From contig DF237093.1 of NCBI GenBank assembly GCA_000708835.1, forward strand, positions 34,973 through 98,972: a stretch of DNA of 64,000 nucleotides. The letters are read 5' to 3'. Source of the DNA: Klebsormidium nitens (taxonomy: Eukaryota; Plantae; Klebsormidiophyceae). Of the stretch, positions 7,201 through 34,764 are shown piece by piece. The notes beneath the pieces are model-generated. The model searched no databases, was not told the origin of the DNA, and saw nothing but the letters and a program-made list of their open reading frames with translations. Each line of letters starts with the position of its first letter. The first letter of the stretch is position 1. Made by a program: the position numbers and the translations under genes.

Positions 7201-8600
7201 AGTTGGAGAAGAAAAGGGAATAAGGTCAGGTAACAGATTGCAGATTATCAGGTCATGTCTATTCCACTCTCGATGCTTGCGGCCTCAGGAATTCTTCATA
7301 CTAAGGCGTGCGGCGTGTCAGAAACTTTGCCAACAGATTGTACAAGTTCATTTGGCATGTTATGAAGCAGCCTTTTGGAATTACAGGGGTCGACAAGCAC
7401 AGAAACAAGGTAGATTGAGATGTCGAAGCTCGTTCCTGTCTTGACCGAATTTGGTTCTGCAGTAGACCAGATTGAAATGGTAGCAAGCAATCAAGCAGAG
7501 TGGAGTCATTGATTATATTCATCAGAGATTCTTAGATTGAGTCATGTACCGTCAATTGGAAAAGCTCGGAAGCTCGCTGCGCCTCTAAAAGCACAGACCT
7601 TCGAGCATGGCGCATCACAGGTCCTGTTCAAGTTGTACGAATAACCCTTCAATCATACATGGCTTGCAGATGCATTTACTCAAAGAAAACAGCATAATGA
7701 CTCATCGATTGGAAGATGAACTCACTTCGTTTAGCTGACATTTGAGTTAAACCCTCGAACCTGTTTGAGTAGATGTTGCTTACTGGTTTGCCAGCTTAGG
7801 GAGCAAGAGCGGCATCTGATGTCCACCAGTACTGAACCACTCTTGGAGGGCTGGCCTCTTTTGGGGACTGGCCTCCAGTGCGAAAATGACTTGTACTTGG
7901 AAGCGCGGGCCCGAGATAGAGCGGCTTCAGGAACAATGGCTCTACATAAAGCGCTTGACCGTATGAAACTGAATGCGACCGCCGATCTGACGTGGTTCTG
8001 ATACCTGAACTAATGGAACTGCAGGGAGGCGAGAACGGGGGCCGGGGTCAAGGTGTTCAATGTCGAAGGCCGGTCGGAATCCTCGTTGCATCAATCTGCT
8101 GCGCTTGTTTGTGAACTCTGGTACGTAATTCGTTGCCTTCAACGGACGGGCTTTCTGAGAAGGTTAGAAAGTATAACCTACAGGACTAGAGGACCATCCA
8201 AAATCTAAAAAGTCAGTTCCCGGGTCAGATGGGGGTCAGATTTGTTATTTTCCCTGGTGAGTGGAGGAGGGCGCCTCGGGGGCGCCTCCCCCCGGGCCTC
8301 CCTAGTGGGCGCTCATACAGTGAGGTGAGCAGGTGCAGGTCGGATGCACGCACGGCCGCGACTTTTGTTTGAACTTGAAACTGTCAAGCTTAAACATCTG
8401 AACGTACAGTTAGAAGTGAAGGCGGCTGGCCGCTGCATGCGTGGCCGGCGCCCGGCCGGCCGCGCAAGGTTACGTCCGCGGCGGCCGTATTGCGCCGCCT
8501 AGTGGGAGGGGTTGGGGTTTGAATTTTCAGACCGCCGTACGCGGGCCCGCCTGGCCGCCTGCTCGCGACTAGTGCGCGCATTTGTCCAGGGGTGCTTCGG

Positions 8601-8610
8601 TTTAGGGTTT
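8601..8610 (+). promoter_or_regulatory. Telo-box (TTTAGGGTTT) upstream of fusion gene copy 1
   Basis: Exact plant telomere-repeat motif ~210 nt upstream of ATG 8817, just downstream of a GC-rich tract. Confidence 0.4.
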
Positions 8611-8816
8611 GCTCATCATTCATCATTCATGCTTCGCCTCTGATATCTAGCTGAGCGTGAACAGGGGCGCTTCCAACACCTAGCAGGGCGCTTTTGATAT
8701 GCATCTTTCCAGCGCTTGTGAACATCCGTCTTTGATTGACACTGCCAGACGAGGATTTTGTTCATGAAGCTGTTTAGACGGGATTATTGGATTGTCGTTG
8801 AGCACTGACGGAAGGA

Positions 8817-11318
8817 ATGGTGCAGCTGGGGAAGTGTTTACGAGTCAAAGGAGTTGGCAAGTGAGTTTCTATTTTCTTCGCTCGTGATGAGATCCTCCAT
8901 TCTGCATGTTACAGAGCAGCTTGCAACCAATCCATTGAGATGCTTTGAGAGCATGGTAGGTGTTTACTGAAGGCCTTGTTGGAAAGGACTGCAGATCTGC
9001 ATCACTAACGAGGTTGGCATATTTGCCACGGTTTGTGCTAAGAGGATTGTGTCATTGATTTGGGTAGCCTCTCACAAACTTTGGGGGCAAGGCAACTCCT
9101 TCCATCAGTTCTGTGATCTATGGCTTGTTTAACAAGGACACTGACAATATACAAATGTTTTCATGATGCAGCGGCGTAACCAGTATTGATGGCTGTCAGG
9201 TAAGCGATTAGCAGCGGGTATGGCTCTTATTTTTACTCTTCAAAGCTAATGCACAGGCAGCATTGGGTATCGTCAGCTTTCTAAGTGAAACTGGTCAGAG
9301 TGTTCCCCAAGTTCTACATTCAGTCCGCTTATGGTCAAAGCACCTTGAGCCAGGTTCTCGAACAGAGCACTTTGAATGGGCTCTTCTAACGTAGGTCTGG
9401 TTCTTTTTACAGACATGCTCAGGAACTGGGGCCCATCTGTTTCTCGTGTCCGCAGGCGTTCTCCCCCAGGCCCAAGAAACCCGAAAAGTGTGCGGCCTGC
9501 GGCTGCCATGCCTCCTTTCACCAACGCCTCGACGGGTCAGGCGCATACACTAGTGCAGATGCAGGGGCCGGTGTGCCTGGACCGGTAGCTGCCAGCAGCC
9601 AACCCCCTGAGTTGGCCATACTTCCAAAGCGAGGGCAGGTCTCCGCAAGGGGAGTCGCTCGCGGTGGCGCACGGAAACAAAGGAGCGCTCGGGTGCCGAA
9701 GACAGGGGGCGTGAGAGCAGAGAAGGCAGGGGCGGAAGTGGAGAAAGCAGGCGGGGGGGATGCGGAGAAGCCTGCAGCTGCGAACCGACCAAAGCGGGGA
9801 CCTGGGTCGAGGGGGGGTAAGGTAGTGGTTCGAGGTGCCGGAAGAGGCCGGAAGTCTAAACAGCTCGTGAAGGCGGATGGAGGAGCTTCCGGAGGGAAGT
9901 CCGCCGAAAGCGTCGTTGTTGAAGAGTTTCGGAGAGGGTCTAAGATTGGCGAACAACTGCTCCGGAAGGTAACTTCTGTTAAGGGGCCCGCTTCGAAGAA
10001 GATGGAAGGAGATGCGTACATGGGCCCTGGATCCAGGATGTTGACGATTTCCCGGAAGGCTGCACGGCTGGGGCTGACGGTGGACCACGTGGCCCCCAAG
10101 GTCGGGAAGGGCGAGGTCGACGAGTTCACAATAACCGAAGCGGCGGCAAAGCTGGGGATGAATCTCGATGTCAGGATCCCGGGCGAAGAGAATGCGACGT
10201 CGCTGCAGAGAGCCAGGACGATCGCCGCAAAAGCAAAGGGGCTTGGGTTGGTTTTGCCGGAGAAACCGACTGAGGAAGGCGGAGTCGGGACTGCTGTGCC
10301 TGGGTTCGCAAAGGCAAGTGCGGCTATGTCTGGAAGTATCGTGGTCGGGACGGGCATTGTAGATCTGACAGCTGAGGGGGAGGCGCAGGGGGCAGGGACG
10401 AAGAGGAGAGCGGCTGAGGAGATTGCAGGGGATGAGAAGAAGGCTCGGCCAAACTTTGGGGGGCGAGTAGAGGCTTGGATGAAGGCTGCGTTGCAGAAGT
10501 CGTGGGAGCAGGAGGGGGGTAGTGCACAGCAGAGCGGGGAGGAGGGGGAAGCGGGGTCTTCTGCGGACTCGATGGATGCCCTAGGTCAGGAAGGCATGGG
10601 GCGTGGAGATGCGGACTTGGGGGTGGGGCTAAGCGGCCTGGTAGTCGGGCAGGTGGGGGTACGAACTGCGGGCAAGGCGGGTGCGGCCGTGACGGAACCC
10701 AAGAAGTTTGGGGACGGAATCCTCTTTGCGCGCAAGACCCTGGCCGACCTTCTAAGCGAGAAGGCATGGCTGGAGAAGGACTTGGCGTTCCAGGAAGTGG
10801 ACTTTCAAAACAAGCACCTGTTCTTCCTGCGCTCGAAGCTGACTGCCAAAGGCGTCATTGACATGTACGACGCGCGGTTGTCGACCAGGATAGTGGTGGC
10901 GTATCTGGGCGGGCATGAAAAGGATCTGGCGGCAGTCAAGCAGCCGGTGGGCACGGTGCGTGTTGTTACGCAGAGGCCTTTCCCTTGCGAAAAGAAGCCT
11001 CTTGTGGCCGAGTGGATTGAGAGCAAAAACGGGTCCAACGTCGCGGAGGTTAGTCATCTGCTTGCACTTCAAGAGTATCGAAACGGGTCAGTGTCAGTCC
11101 CGTTGTTGGCTTACGCATACATGCGCATATTGAAACCGGCAGATGTCAAGTACGTTGTCATAGTGACCCAGCAAAAGTTGGTGGAGCGGTATCTCATGAA
11201 GCACTTCCTGTTTCTAGGCTTTGAGTTCATCGAGCAGACAGGGAACGGAGAGTGTGTGCTGGCACTAGATCTGGAGAAGGCGGTGGGGTTGCTGTATGGG
11301 CCATGGAGGTTTACCTGA
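8817..11318 (+). CDS. ZF-HD-type zinc finger / GNAT-like acyltransferase fusion, copy 1; exons 8817-8860, 9172-9199, 9456-11318 (644 aa)
   Basis: All junctions are GT-AG and phase-consistent. Spliced N-terminus MVQLGKCLRVKGVGNGVTSIDGCQAFSPRPKKPEKCAACGCHASFHQR matches the ZF-HD finger pattern (YRECLKNHA...DGCGEFMP...CAACGCHRNFHR). C-terminal block DMYDAR...VGTVRVV...FPCE...AEVSHL...EYRNG...FLGFEFI is GNAT/LuxI-FeeM-like. Confidence 0.85.
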
Positions 11319-11547
11319 CTTGTACAGTAGGAGGCTCCTAGAAGGTTCCTCCACATTGGATAAGGAGAGAGACAATTTTTGAGTCACAGTCAAAAGACAT
11401 TGAAACTTCATCGAATAGATGTCAACGACGGTTGTTGCTGTTTCGAGCTTTAGCTATTCATATGTAACCGGTCGCGAAGATTTTCTGGTCTGCCGTTTAC
11501 AATGGTGCCATGCTCAGGATGGAGTGAAACGGTCCCTCTCGTGATAT

Positions 11548-11766
11548 NNNNNNNNNNNNNNNNNNNNNNNNNNNNNNNNNNNNNNNNNNNNNNNNNNNNN
11601 NNNNNNNNNNNNNNNNNNNNNNNNNNNNNNNNNNNNNNNNNNNNNNNNNNNNNNNNNNNNNNNNNNNNNNNNNNNNNNNNNNNNNNNNNNNNNNNNNNNN
11701 NNNNNNNNNNNNNNNNNNNNNNNNNNNNNNNNNNNNNNNNNNNNNNNNNNNNNNNNNNNNNNNNNN
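11548..11766. other. Assembly gap (219 N)
   Basis: Run of N in the sequence. Confidence 1.
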
Positions 11767-12504: not shown

Positions 12505-14306
<1,802 letters not shown>

Positions 14307-15006
14307 GGCTTCCCAGCCACTGGCTACGAATCTGACCGCCTGCTTAGGACTTTGTCCCTCCTCGAAGGCGGCCGCTCTACAGCCTGCCGCGGCAAAGAAA
14401 GAGGGCAAATCAAGGAGCTTCCAAGCCTTTTCAAGCAGCCCCGAGCTCCAGTCAAGCAGCTAGTGTGAATTGGTACCAATATTTTGATCGAGGGTTGGAA
14501 CTTGAAATAAGTTTCTCGAAGTTTAACAGCGGGCATCATCGACGGATCAGAATTGCGCAGCCTCCCACATGAAGCAAGTCAGTACCACCGGGTCCCACCC
14601 AGTCCACCTGGATTGCGCAGACTGCTCGCTACCGTATCTAGGATAGGTCCTAGAGCTCTATGAGTCTATCCTTGTCTAGGGAGTCAGGGAAGACTGCAGT
14701 CTGTAGACGGGACGTGGTGTGGGCGGCCAGGACGGCTTCAGCTCCTCGGAGTCCAAGCAAGGACGCCCTGTATCAAGACGTTCAAAACTGCATCCTTATC
14801 CTGCGTCTGCACAGCTCTAGGATTGTCATTGTTCCAGGCATATAAAGCAAGCTCGAAAGTACCTACGTTGCTGAAGGGAGGTGCTGAAGGCAGGTGCTGT
14901 TTCTGTTGACGTTCCTTACAAGTACGGCCTTCTCCACCTTCTGAACAACAGGTGTTCAAGCAGTTCCTTTGTGTGCGTTGAAGTTCCTAGGTAAACTACC
15001 TGTAGG

Positions 15007-32433: not shown

Positions 32434-34764
32434 TCATATAAGCAGGTTTCTATGTGCTTTCTCTAGGTTTACAGCGAGCACCGACCCTGTAGTACCAAAG
32501 TTTTCGATGAACTCAAAGCCCAGAAACGACAAGTGTTTGAAGAAATATCTCTCAACTTGCGTCTGGGTCACTGACAACAAAACACAATTTACACCCGCCG
32601 GCTTCAGAATCTTTAAGTAGATATAAGCGAACAAAGGGATCGTCACAGCCCCGTTCCGGTATTGAGGGAACGTATACAAGTAGCTGAGCTCCGCTACGTG
32701 CGTGCTGATGCTCCGCCCCTCGAGCCATTCTGTCACGGCTGGCCGCCGCTCACAGTCAAATGGCCGTTCCATGACCACGCGTATCGTCCCCAGCGGCTGC
32801 GAGAGTTCTACCCGCTCTTTCTCGTCCTTAGCCAGATACGCAATGACCTTCTTCGTTGACGACCTGGCATCCAGGGTATCCGAGACGGTTCTTTGATCGA
32901 GCTGCGATCGCAGGATCGTCAGGTGCTTATTCTCAGGGCCCACCTCTTTGAAAGCCAGGTCCTTCTCGCACGACTTCTTATTGCTCAAAAAGTCCGCCAG
33001 CATTTGTCGTGCAAAACCGATCCCGTCCCCAAACGCTGTATATTTACTCGCACTGCCAGTTCCCGCCTCTTCCCATCCGATTGTCCTCGTCTTCGACTCC
33101 TTCAGCCACTTCCCCTTTCTCGCACTGCCTGCTTGTTCTCCTTGCTGCATTGGCGCCCCTCTCACTTCAAACAACAGCAGCCCCGCACCTCTTCGCACCC
33201 CCCTAGGCTCGAACCCCGTTGTCCCCCGCCCCGACGGACTTTGGCCAGAGGTTCCTGGCGCGCTCTGCATCCAAGTGTGGCCAACGCGAGCCTTCTTCGC
33301 CGGCCCCGCCAGTTCTTCCCGTGTCCTCCTTTTCGCGCCGCTCCTAGTTGCCTCCCCCTCCGTCAGGTCCACCACACTGGCCCACTCGGAGCCTCTCCCC
33401 ACCACCGATGCTGCAAAGCCCCCCCGCCCGAACAAGGCGGAACCCCCCCCTCCGGCACCCATCACTTTGTCAGGCAACACCAGTCCCAGCTCTCCGGCCC
33501 TCTCCGCAATCGTCTTAACTTTCGGCACTCGCTTGCCCTTCTTCCCTCCGTCCTCATCATGACGACCGGCGCCCAGCTTCACTCCCCGTAGCGCGGCAAT
33601 CTGTGCAATTGTCAGCTCCTTGGGCTTCCCTTCGCCCGGATAGTTGGGCTCCACCGTGACGCCCAGCTGAGCGGCCGTCTCCGCGATCGTGAGATCGCCC
33701 TTTCTGCAGTACCTGCTTTTGCCGGCGGCCCCACCAGAAGTTGCCCCATCACTTGGGTCCAATCGGCCCGTACTCACGGCAGTAGCTGCGCCCCCCCATA
33801 CGGCGCCTGCCGTTTGCTCCGCACGGGTTTGCCTCTGACCAATACGCCCCCCCTTCCGACCTCTTTCCCCGCCGCTTTGATCTCCAACGGCCTGACTGCG
33901 TCTGGGAATGATTGGAACCTCGTCCACATTGACACCAACCAGAGGGATCCAGGGTGCAACGCCCCCAGGCACCACTCCAGTGTCAATGTCCAGTCGCTGG
34001 TGAAAGGAGGCATGGCATCCGCAGGCCTCGCACCTCTGGGGATTCTTGGGCTTAGGCGAGAACGCCTGTGAACAGCGGAGCCAAGGGGGAACTGCGTCAA
34101 CTGCTTGCAACTGACGATTGGACGTTAAATCCAGCATGGTTGAATTGAACCAGACAAGAGCCCCGCATCATGCAACAGCACATGGTGCTTCAGAGCAGCG
34201 ATTCCTAAGATGCTACTTGCCAAAAGCGCAAAGAAGAATGCAAGTCAGAAGCTAAGACTGAAACGCATTTGGAAGTGACCTGATAGCCCCATGCATTCGA
34301 TGATGTTTGGCACCAGAATAATGCAGCGTACCTGACACCCATCATAAACAGTGACGCCCCTGCAAGAGAAACAAGCTGTGAAGTCAAGACTTTGCTTACA
34401 GAAGTTGTCCAAACAGTTGTTGTGCACAAGCACTCTAGGAGCCCACCAAAGTTCAGCATCAAGGGCAAACTGCATCTTTAAAATATTGAAACAAGGCTGT
34501 ATGGTAAGCAGCAGCTTTCTTGAACCTACTCAACTAACAGCATCACATTGAACTCATTGGGCTGGTCCAGTGACGGCACACAGTGTTTGGTGCCATTGCC
34601 CTATCTGATTGCAGCAAGCAGAATAGCCAATCATCGTTCAGAATGGGCCTCTAGATAAACATTGAGAAACACACCAAAACGAGATAGCCAAAAAAAATGA
34701 TGCACGGATATTAGACTTACTTGCTGGCGCCTTTGTTGCGCAGACACTTCCCAAGCTGCGCCAT
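32434..34764 (-). CDS. ZF-HD-type zinc finger / GNAT-like acyltransferase fusion, copy 2; exons 34764-34721, 34359-34332, 34065-32434
   Basis: Spliced N-terminus MAQLGKCLRNKGASKGVTVYDGCQAFSPKPKNPQRCEACGCHASFHQR. Exon sizes (44 and 28 nt) and phases are identical to copy 1. C-terminal domain is collinear with copy 1 (FGDGI.FAR..LAD, EKDLAF.EV, GT.RVV..RPF.CE, YRNG, ILKPA, VERY..KH..FLGFEFIE, LEKA). Confidence 0.85.

Follow-up and report, generated by a model that had tools for sequence, protein, structure and literature searches.

The window analysed, a 64,000-nucleotide stretch of the Klebsormidium nitens genome, carries two related genes, 23 kb apart, each of which encodes an N-terminal finger homologous to the ZF-HD dimerisation domain, a long linker, and a C-terminal domain of probable GNAT fold. 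Gene A (KFL_001440110) comprises three exons on the plus strand (8817-8860, 9172-9199, and 9456-11318), with a spliced product of 644 aa that is 100% identical to the NCBI model. Paralogue B (KFL_001440160, 567 aa) lies on the minus strand. The features of the locus are as follows:

8625..8816, plus strand: 5' leader of gene A; in four runs, RNA contigs begin at 8625-8638
8817..8860, plus strand: coding part of exon 1 of gene A, 44 nt, which runs from M1 into codon 15 as far as its second base; four RNA runs contain the 8860/9172 joint
8861..9171, plus strand: intron 1 of gene A, 311 nt, GT..AG, phase 2, from RNA contigs
9172..9199, plus strand: exon 2 of gene A, a micro-exon of 28 nt; both joints in four RNA runs
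9200..9455, plus strand: intron 2 of gene A, 256 nt, GT..AG, phase 0; RNA joint reported as 9196/9453, cut at +3
9456..9527, plus strand: start of exon 3 of gene A, second half of the finger, C36-x2-C39-x-C41-H42-x3-H46 followed by Q47-R48
9528..10733, plus strand: linker of gene A, residues 49-450, G/A-rich, with conserved short motifs and no detectable domain
10041..10259, plus strand: three copies of [LFR]TI[AST]xxAAxLG[LVM], residues 220-292, common to A, B, and the orthologue
10356..10445, plus strand: IVDLT and an acidic run (SUMO-interaction-motif-like), then KRR-x10-KKAR (bipartite-NLS-like), kept in A, B, and the orthologue
10734..11315, plus strand: predicted C-terminal GNAT-fold domain of gene A, FeeM-like, residues ~451-644, from Pfam, ESM Atlas, Foldseek, and VIA-align
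11316..11318, plus strand: stop codon of gene A, from the open reading frame
11319..11500, plus strand: 3' UTR of gene A; contig ends range from 11421 to beyond 11500
32434..34764, minus strand: paralogue B, exons 34764-34721, 34359-34332, and 34065-32434

The splicing of the two micro-exons to the long exon, which the earlier note had proposed, is borne out by RNA: both joints of gene A (8860/9172 and 9199/9456, each GT..AG) occur where predicted in contigs from four runs belonging to four studies, a single contig of 1275 nt covers the two of them, and both joints of paralogue B are likewise present in four RNA runs. Genes A and B are real, expressed nuclear genes of K. nitens. The gene A leader contains three upstream ATGs, at 8629, 8699, and 8764, and an in-frame TGA (8799-8801) precedes the start codon. 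Exon 1, conserved at the orthologous locus (L002) of another alga, holds the first cysteine of the finger, C7, together with K11 at the canonical histidine position, and exon 2, kept both at that locus and in paralogue B, has the DGC motif and Q24 at its end. Intron 1 is retained in contigs at ~10% of the spliced depth, read-through leading to a TGA directly after the donor. Downstream of gene A, an assembly gap begins at 11548.

The finger of gene A reads C7-x15-C23(DGC)-x12-C36-x2-C39-x-C41-H42-x3-H46, with exactly the spacing given in the earlier note. The 57-aa N-terminus matches the Pfam ZF-HD_dimer profile (PF04770; gathering cut-off, 27 bits) with 46.1 bits and E 6e-12, which excludes chance, and paralogue B scores 51.0 bits (E 1.8e-13), the matches of A and B covering positions 3-52 of the 55 in the profile. 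Exon 3 of gene A by itself reaches 20.4 bits, so both micro-exons are needed for the match. Further support comes from the ESM Atlas, where 34 of the 100 clusters closest in features are ZF-HD_dimer and the structural comparison gives a TM of 0.74 to a ZF-HD cluster. Searches with the finger in a 5.8-billion-protein collection, restricted by length, brought up the two K. nitens proteins and no others in the 312-992 aa bracket and yielded no candidates in the 110-350 aa bracket; against PDB sequences the finger gave chance matches only. On the other side, TIGR01566 (ZF_HD_prot_N) is matched with 29.6 and 37.4 bits (E 7e-7 and 2.6e-9), below its curated cut-off of 51.1. The ZF-dimer domain is described with conserved ligands, five cysteines and three histidines arranged as C-x3-H...C...C-x2-C-x-C-H-x3-H (PMC10415114). 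Seven of these eight are found in A, B, and the orthologue, the histidine of C-x3-H being replaced by lysine in all three (CLRVK or CLRNK). The ZF-HD identity claimed for the finger therefore stands at the level of PF04770, and its canonical form does not: sequence comparison indicates a divergent homologue of the ZF-HD/MIF ZF-dimer domain, and whether it folds around two zinc ions in the canonical way or dimerises as ZHD fingers do is uncertain, because one histidine ligand is absent and the TIGR01566 cut-off is failed.

No homeodomain could be detected, as the earlier note had seen from the sequence: Pfam Homeobox gave no match at E up to 10, and none appeared among the NCBIfam matches, from a copy that may or may not hold a ZF-HD homeobox model. 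The linker, long and disordered with conserved short motifs, has no domain match in Pfam, NCBIfam, or PDB sequences, the last search returning one unrelated hit at chance level. One copy of the TIxxAAxLG repeat in paralogue B shows weak Sigma70_r4 helix-turn-helix matches (E 0.013-0.019). From their consensus patterns only, the IVDLT/acidic stretch and the KRR-x10-KKAR stretch may function in SUMO interaction and nuclear import, respectively.

The C-terminal domain of ~195 aa can be assigned to the GNAT fold with moderate confidence, limited by a shallow alignment; the GNAT-like C-terminus proposed earlier is consistently supported by the fold matches, although the sequence scores stay below cut-off. 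FeeM is its best Pfam match, best structural match, and best ESM Atlas neighbour. In Pfam, the isolated domain scores 19.6 bits against FeeM (PF21926; E 8.4e-4; gathering cut-off, 27), the whole gene A protein 16.5 bits, and the domain against Acetyltransf_5 14.7 bits (E 0.049; cut-off, 22.4), FeeM and Acetyltransf_5 each being matched by three of the four homologues. A profile of the four C-domains found no match among PDB sequences at E<=10. In the ESM Atlas, the domain reaches a feature score of 0.95 and TM values of 0.65-0.75 to FeeM clusters. Two separately predicted AF2 models, built from the 4-sequence alignment and of low to moderate confidence (pLDDT 49, and 65 for paralogue B), both display the order β4-α3-β5-α4-β6-β7, and the PDB matches listed by Foldseek for them are all GNATs. 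By E-value, FeeM (2g0b) is the top match of the gene A model; for the paralogue B model, with 198 matches at E<=1e-3, it comes fourth by E-value yet has the best TM, 0.58-0.60. The structural alignment with FeeM (PDB 2G0B), LasI, EsaI, and TofI discloses a common GNAT core, β4-α3-β5-α4-β6, with TM 0.58-0.60 and VIA-align Z scores of 8.5-8.8 (FeeM, 8.8; LasI, 8.5; TofI and EsaI also high), at an identity of only 13-15% and with the Pfam cut-off not reached. The domain thus appears closest to FeeM/LuxI-type N-acyltransferases, a subfamily assignment made on weak scores. In GNATs, motif A (R/Q-x-x-G-x-G/A) occupies the β4-α3 loop and binds the pyrophosphate; here the loop (11076-11093), with the invariant Y565-R-N-G568, reads YRNG[SA]V at the expected place, preceded by an invariant E555 on the predicted β4 strand. 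Its spacing differs from that of motif A, and cofactor binding is therefore not assured.

Paralogue B shares with gene A the positions and phases of the introns, the finger, the linker motifs, and the GNAT-like C-domain, at an overall identity of 38%, and the orthologous locus has the same exon structure as gene A. Comparison of gene A with the orthologue gives dN/dS values of 0.07 for the finger, 0.135 for the C-domain, and 0.31 for the linker (dS ~0.5-0.6); the finger and the C-domain are under purifying selection, strong for the C-domain. A four-taxon tree is compatible with one homologue, P0003, as either the orthologue of gene A or a pre-duplication lineage; a common ubiquitin-S27a neighbour, together with the C-terminal tail, suggests the former.

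These observations are best accounted for as a whole by a nuclear GNAT acyltransferase tethered through a ZF-dimer finger, a fusion of the Klebsormidium lineage, to which we give a probability of about 0.55. The three-part protein, N-terminal finger, long linker, and C-terminal GNAT-fold domain, would be carried into the nucleus by the NLS-like motif, where the finger would mediate homo- or hetero-oligomerisation with, or tethering to, other ZF-dimer proteins, and the GNAT domain would move an acyl group from acyl-CoA to the amine of a protein or small molecule. In this scheme the nuclear localisation is putative, as are dimerisation and catalysis together with their donor and acceptor, and acylation of ZHD factors or chromatin, as the earlier note envisaged, is speculation. 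Against it count the sub-cut-off sequence scores of the C-domain, the limited confidence of the AF2 models, the non-canonical β4-α3 loop, and the divergence of the finger, and also the typical donor of FeeM and LuxI enzymes, acyl-ACP, which is unexpected in the nucleus.

The foremost alternative retains the GNAT fold without transferase activity, as a ligand- or protein-binding module; the whole protein would be a long regulator of the MIF type, sequestering other ZF-dimer proteins or serving as their scaffold. The non-canonical YRNG[SA]V loop and the failure of every family match of the C-domain to reach its cut-off would fit such a protein, the conserved SIM-like, NLS-like, and HTH-like linker motifs suggest a regulatory scaffold, and MIFs act through ZHD binding (PMC10415114). 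The strong purifying selection on the C-domain speaks against it, as do the invariant glutamate on the predicted β4 and the invariant arginine and glycine in the cofactor loop, which fit retained catalysis and do not prove it; we regard this alternative as unlikely, at roughly half the weight of the tethered acyltransferase. Less probable still is a small-molecule synthase, in which the C-domain would make an N-acyl amino acid or lipid-like signal in the manner of FeeM, LuxI, and OlsB, the finger serving only to oligomerise and the protein being unconnected with ZHD factors or chromatin. The prominence of FeeM in sequence and structure, with LasI, TofI, and EsaI close behind, agrees with a synthase, as does the frequent fusion of bacterial FeeM domains to sensor domains (cNMP-binding, PilZ); however, the conserved bipartite-NLS-like and SIM-like motifs favour a nuclear protein, plant acyl-ACP donors are plastidial or mitochondrial, and the FeeM assignment draws on weak scores. 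Finally, the notion that the cysteines and histidines of the finger form their pattern by chance, or that the micro-exons are annotation artefacts and the gene consists of exon 3 alone, which could appeal to the long open reading frame of exon 3 and to the prokaryote-style gene call that missed the micro-exons on the orthologue contig (P0002), is refuted by the RNA joints of both paralogues in four independent studies and by the ZF-HD_dimer E-values, the micro-exons moreover being conserved with mostly synonymous changes, and is left with a negligible probability.

The Klebsormidium proteins share with MIF microproteins a finger without homeodomain, but MIFs are about 100 aa in size, whereas the proteins described here comprise 567-644 aa, with conserved linker motifs and a conserved 195-aa C-domain under purifying selection. 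MIFs are described as microproteins, and any ZF-dimer-only protein has been classed as 'MIF' (PMC10415114). With land-plant ZHD/HD_PLINC factors the Klebsormidium proteins have in common the N-terminal ZF-dimer finger, with its DGC and CxxCxCHxxxH signature and a score above the PF04770 cut-off; they differ in lacking the homeodomain, in the lysine at the first histidine ligand, in the GNAT-fold C-terminus, and in the two introns that interrupt the finger, most ZHD genes reportedly being intronless (PMC5585987). Known FeeM/LuxI enzymes are bacterial acyl-ACP users that occur by themselves or in fusion with bacterial sensor domains; in contrast, the Klebsormidium proteins come from a eukaryote and possess NLS-like motifs as well as a zinc finger. 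The bacterial cNMP-binding+FeeM and PilZ+FeeM proteins of the ESM Atlas clusters also place a FeeM-type GNAT C-terminal to a regulatory or targeting domain, but with another N-terminal module, and no sequence-level relationship to them was found among 1.84 billion representatives.

Indeed, an exhaustive phmmer search with the C-domain against these 1.84 billion representative proteins recovered only P0001, P0003, and P0004, all Klebsormidium-type; at E<=1e-3, neither bacteria nor other eukaryotes yielded a relative. Likewise, pattern scans from the C-domain alignment found no relatives in viral contigs or JGI metagenome contigs. The fusion therefore looks lineage-specific, apparently confined to Klebsormidium and close relatives; it most likely arose inside that lineage and was duplicated there. 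For the same reason, the earlier proposal of a third ZF-HD class bearing on the origin of the family is not supported, and a claim of horizontal transfer from bacteria cannot be supported, no bacterial relative having been found. An ESM Atlas feature list for the C-domain includes a Nucleocytoviricota FeeM cluster, which prompted the idea of a giant virus. A giant-virus or transposon origin was rejected, given the lack of a relative in the viral contigs scanned, the conserved spliceosomal introns, and the housekeeping neighbour.

As to novelty, searches of the literature on Klebsormidium ZF-HD/PLINC, on the gene identifiers, and on ZF-HD_dimer with acetyltransferase brought up no description of the architecture, in line with the earlier claim, although it may be listed in the supplements of PMC10415114, PMC5737466, and PMC4052687; the claim is weakened in that the gene models of A and B and the finger annotation are already public and that there is a general report of ZF-dimer proteins with further 'integrated domains' (PMC10415114). 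The fusion is a real variant of domain architecture, new and modestly interesting; it is lineage-restricted, and its significance is not dramatic. It indicates that an enzyme-like domain can be joined to the ZF-dimer finger, a natural case for a role of the finger without a homeodomain, and it would give a eukaryotic, probably nuclear protein a FeeM-type GNAT fold, an unusual fold in an unusual setting that invites an enzymatic test.

A bolder proposal, which we consider doubtful, is that the Klebsormidium ZF-dimer finger targets an active acyltransferase and not a homeodomain, with few or no true finger+homeodomain proteins among the HD_PLINC genes there. Were it true, (i) the canonical ZF+HD fusion would be younger than the Klebsormidiophyceae split, (ii) the finger would first have served other effector domains as a general-purpose module for tethering or dimerisation, (iii) the published dating of PLINC, put by TAPscan at the ancestor common to Klebsormidiales and Phragmoplastophyta, would be revised, and (iv) a nuclear FeeM-type acyltransferase would be defined. 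TAPscan v4 counts four HD_PLINC genes in Klebsormidium under the rule 'HD_PLINC: ZF-HD_dimer should', for which the finger alone suffices, and genes A and B are for that reason probably counted as homeodomain factors. With at least two Klebsormidium ZF-HD_dimer proteins lacking a homeodomain, the dating of the ZF-HD family needs a protein-by-protein check.

The gene KFL_001440110 encodes, in 644 residues, an N-terminal ZF-HD_dimer (PF04770) zinc finger, a linker and a C-terminal GNAT-like domain, and its paralogue KFL_001440160 (567 residues) is found on the minus strand at a distance of 23 kb. The relevant features of the window are:

8799-8801, plus strand: in-frame TGA 5' of the KFL_001440110 ATG (sequence reading)
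8817-8860, plus strand: exon 1 of KFL_001440110, with a GTGAGT donor at its end (sequence reading of 8400-11700)
9172-9199, plus strand: exon 2, a 28-nt micro-exon preceded by an AG acceptor and followed by a GTAAGC donor
9456 to the stop at 11316-11318, plus strand: exon 3, starting after CGCAG (sequence reading)
10041-10259, within exon 3 (residues 220-292; residues 149-220 in the paralogue): three repeats of the 12-residue [LFR]TI[AST]xxAAxLG[LVM], kept in both paralogues and the orthologue
10356-10445, within exon 3: IVDLT with an acidic run, then KRR-x10-KKAR, both kept in the same three proteins
~12505-14400, minus strand: ubiquitin-ribosomal protein S27a fusion gene kfl00144_0120, adjoining KFL_001440110
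34764-34721, 34359-34332 and 34065-32434, minus strand: exons of KFL_001440160, with the same intron positions and phases as KFL_001440110

Both genes have an established structure and are expressed. Splicing the three exons proposed in the earlier note yields exactly the public 644-residue protein, an NCBI hypothetical protein of Klebsormidium nitens with 100% identity to the exon-3 product (residues 420-620 searched). Both joints, 8860/9172 and 9199/9456 (the latter given by the RNA contigs as 9196/9453 with the cut at +3, which is equal), occur in contigs from four RNA runs, each belonging to a different study, and a single 1275-nt contig covers the two. The RNA contigs display GT..AG introns and a transcript start at ~8625-8638; both joints of the paralogue are found in the same four runs at similar depth.

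The finger is read as a true but divergent ZF-dimer homologue, an observation far beyond chance. Once spliced, the 57-residue N-terminus matches the Pfam profile at 46.1 bits (E 6e-12; cut-off 27), compared with only 20.4 bits for exon 3 by itself; the paralogue finger scores 51 bits. Against the stricter TIGR01566 model (cut-off 51.1 bits), the scores of 29.6 and 37.4 bits fall under the cut-off. Among the 100 clusters that the ESM Atlas ranks closest by features, 34 are ZF-HD_dimer clusters (best score 0.86, with 195 features in common), and the structural TM to a ZF-HD cluster is 0.74. The Cys/His spacing is exactly that first reported from the sequence. The ZF-dimer domain conserves five Cys and three His (PMC10415114), whereas the Klebsormidium finger retains seven of these eight ligands, since Lys replaces the His of C-x3-H (CLRVK in KFL_001440110 and its orthologue, CLRNK in the paralogue).

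The GNAT fold predicted for the C-terminus is supported by structure searches with two AF2 models, in agreement with the acyltransferase assignment of the earlier note. Scanned alone, residues 430-644 give 19.6 bits (E 8.4e-4; cut-off 27) for FeeM and 14.7 bits (cut-off 22.4) for Acetyltransf_5, below the curated thresholds for membership of either family; three of four homologues match both, and NCBIfam returns a weak match to a FeeM-like exosortase-associated acyltransferase. In the ESM Atlas the domain groups with FeeM/GNAT clusters, both on features (score 0.95, with 169-184 in common) and on structure (TM 0.65-0.75 across 161-187 residues). The model of the KFL_001440110 domain is poor (pLDDT 49) and retrieves GNAT folds only, FeeM (2g0b) first, with VIA-align Z of 8.8 to FeeM and 8.5 to LasI; its best AlphaFold-DB cluster matches are named GNAT or FeeM proteins. 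The separate paralogue model is better (pLDDT 65, pTM 0.63), with 198 PDB matches at E<=1e-3; all matches listed have the GNAT fold, FeeM showing the highest TM among them (0.58/0.60), and Swiss-Prot models matched comprise N-acetyltransferases and one LuxI. Placement of the C-domain in the FeeM/LuxI branch is a best guess. Both models preserve the core order β4-α3-β5-α4-β6-β7, with an invariant E555 on β4 and an invariant YRNG in the β4-α3 loop. The textbook GNAT motif in this loop is R/Q-x-x-G-x-G/A, whose spacing the YRNG loop does not match.

The paralogues are ~50% identical in the C-domain and 38% overall. The orthologue, from a Logan contig assembled for a different sample (L002), is 86-88% identical in the C-domain; the gene caller overlooked its micro-exons, which are there nonetheless and conserved, differing mostly by synonymous changes. 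A further sequence, the more distant third one (55-57% identical), is truncated by its contig end and has retained the ubiquitin-S27a neighbour found after KFL_001440110 as well. Two contigs from other samples carry such a gene after the homologue (S27a match at L001 1657-1893, ubiquitin match at L002 13547-13786), indicating conserved synteny; kfl00144_0120 itself serves as a qPCR reference gene (PMC9643330). Finger and C-domain are both under purifying selection, with Nei-Gojobori dN/dS between KFL_001440110 and the orthologue (dS ~0.5-0.6) of 0.07 and 0.135, respectively, and 0.31 for the linker.

The absence of a homeodomain, as originally described, is upheld by Pfam (no linker match in either paralogue, E up to 10), NCBIfam (just the finger and weak acyltransferase models) and PDB sequences (residues 49-445, a single chance-level match), these searches being run without a positive control for a ZF-HD-class homeodomain model. 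The linker repeats look like the initial helix plus turn of a helix-turn-helix, one paralogue repeat giving weak, sub-threshold Sigma70_r4 (sigma-70 region 4 HTH) matches (E 0.013-0.019), and could represent a degenerate DNA-binding or peptide-docking repeat. By pattern match, [IV]VDLT with its acidic run fits the PIAS-type SUMO-interaction consensus and KRR-x10-KKAR that of a classical bipartite nuclear localisation signal, which makes them putative motifs of these kinds.

Gene structure, expression, homology, fold, selection and distribution are established. Beyond these we infer as most likely, with a probability of about 0.55, a nuclear protein in which the finger would drive oligomerisation or tethering to other ZF-dimer proteins, while the GNAT domain would use acyl-CoA as donor for acylating an amine. 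A non-catalytic GNAT fold within a MIF-like scaffold is less likely; an N-acyl synthase that makes small molecules and has no connection with transcription is more doubtful still. An artefact is refuted and has a negligible probability.

An exhaustive phmmer search with the C-domain as query, covering 1.84 billion representative proteins, recovers only three Klebsormidium-type clusters, and scans of viral and metagenome contigs reveal no relatives; at HMMER sensitivity the C-domain, and with it the fusion, is confined to Klebsormidium-type algae. This distribution argues against the ancestral "third ZF-HD class" proposed earlier: the architecture stands, its evolutionary weight and novelty having been overstated. 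The gene models and finger annotation of both genes were already public, the KFL_001440110 entry being annotated with PF04770 and named "ZF-HD dimerization-type domain" in UniRef. A survey across all kingdoms terms every finger-only protein MIF and reports "integrated domains" in ~10% of ZF-dimer genes (PMC10415114), so finger-plus-domain proteins are not new as a concept; in the article texts covered, no account of a finger-GNAT protein or of these two genes was found. The architecture is real and moderately interesting.

The architecture serves mainly as a warning about counting the ZF-HD/PLINC factors of streptophyte algae by domain rules; it further offers a testable case of a ZF-dimer finger joined to an enzyme-like domain. 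The TAPscan v4 rule "HD_PLINC: ZF-HD_dimer should" is satisfied by the finger without demanding a homeodomain; Klebsormidium and Chlorokybus have 4 such genes each by this count, Chara 3 and Mesostigma 0 (PMC11712027, supplementary tables). Judging by their Pfam scores, both genes are very probably among the four of Klebsormidium, and streptophyte algal PLINC counts may therefore include non-homeodomain proteins. TAPscan v4 dates PLINC to the ancestor that Klebsormidiales and Phragmoplastophyta share, and another genome paper to the streptophyte base (PMC7027972).

In both genes the linker and C-domain occupy a single 1.6-1.9 kb exon (9456-11318; 32434-34065), the longest open reading frames of the 64-kb window, unlike the 48-residue finger, which is spread over three exons. 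The introns of KFL_001440110 (8861-9171 and 9200-9455) are retained in RNA contigs of several runs at ~10% of spliced depth; read-through of donor 1 meets a TGA at once, ending translation just past codon 15, so that these transcripts are unproductive. A 219-N assembly gap (11548-11766) lies directly past the 3' UTR. The 5' leader (8625-8816) contains three upstream ATGs (8629, 8699 and 8764) opening uORFs of 4, 22 and 14 codons, which may exert translational control.
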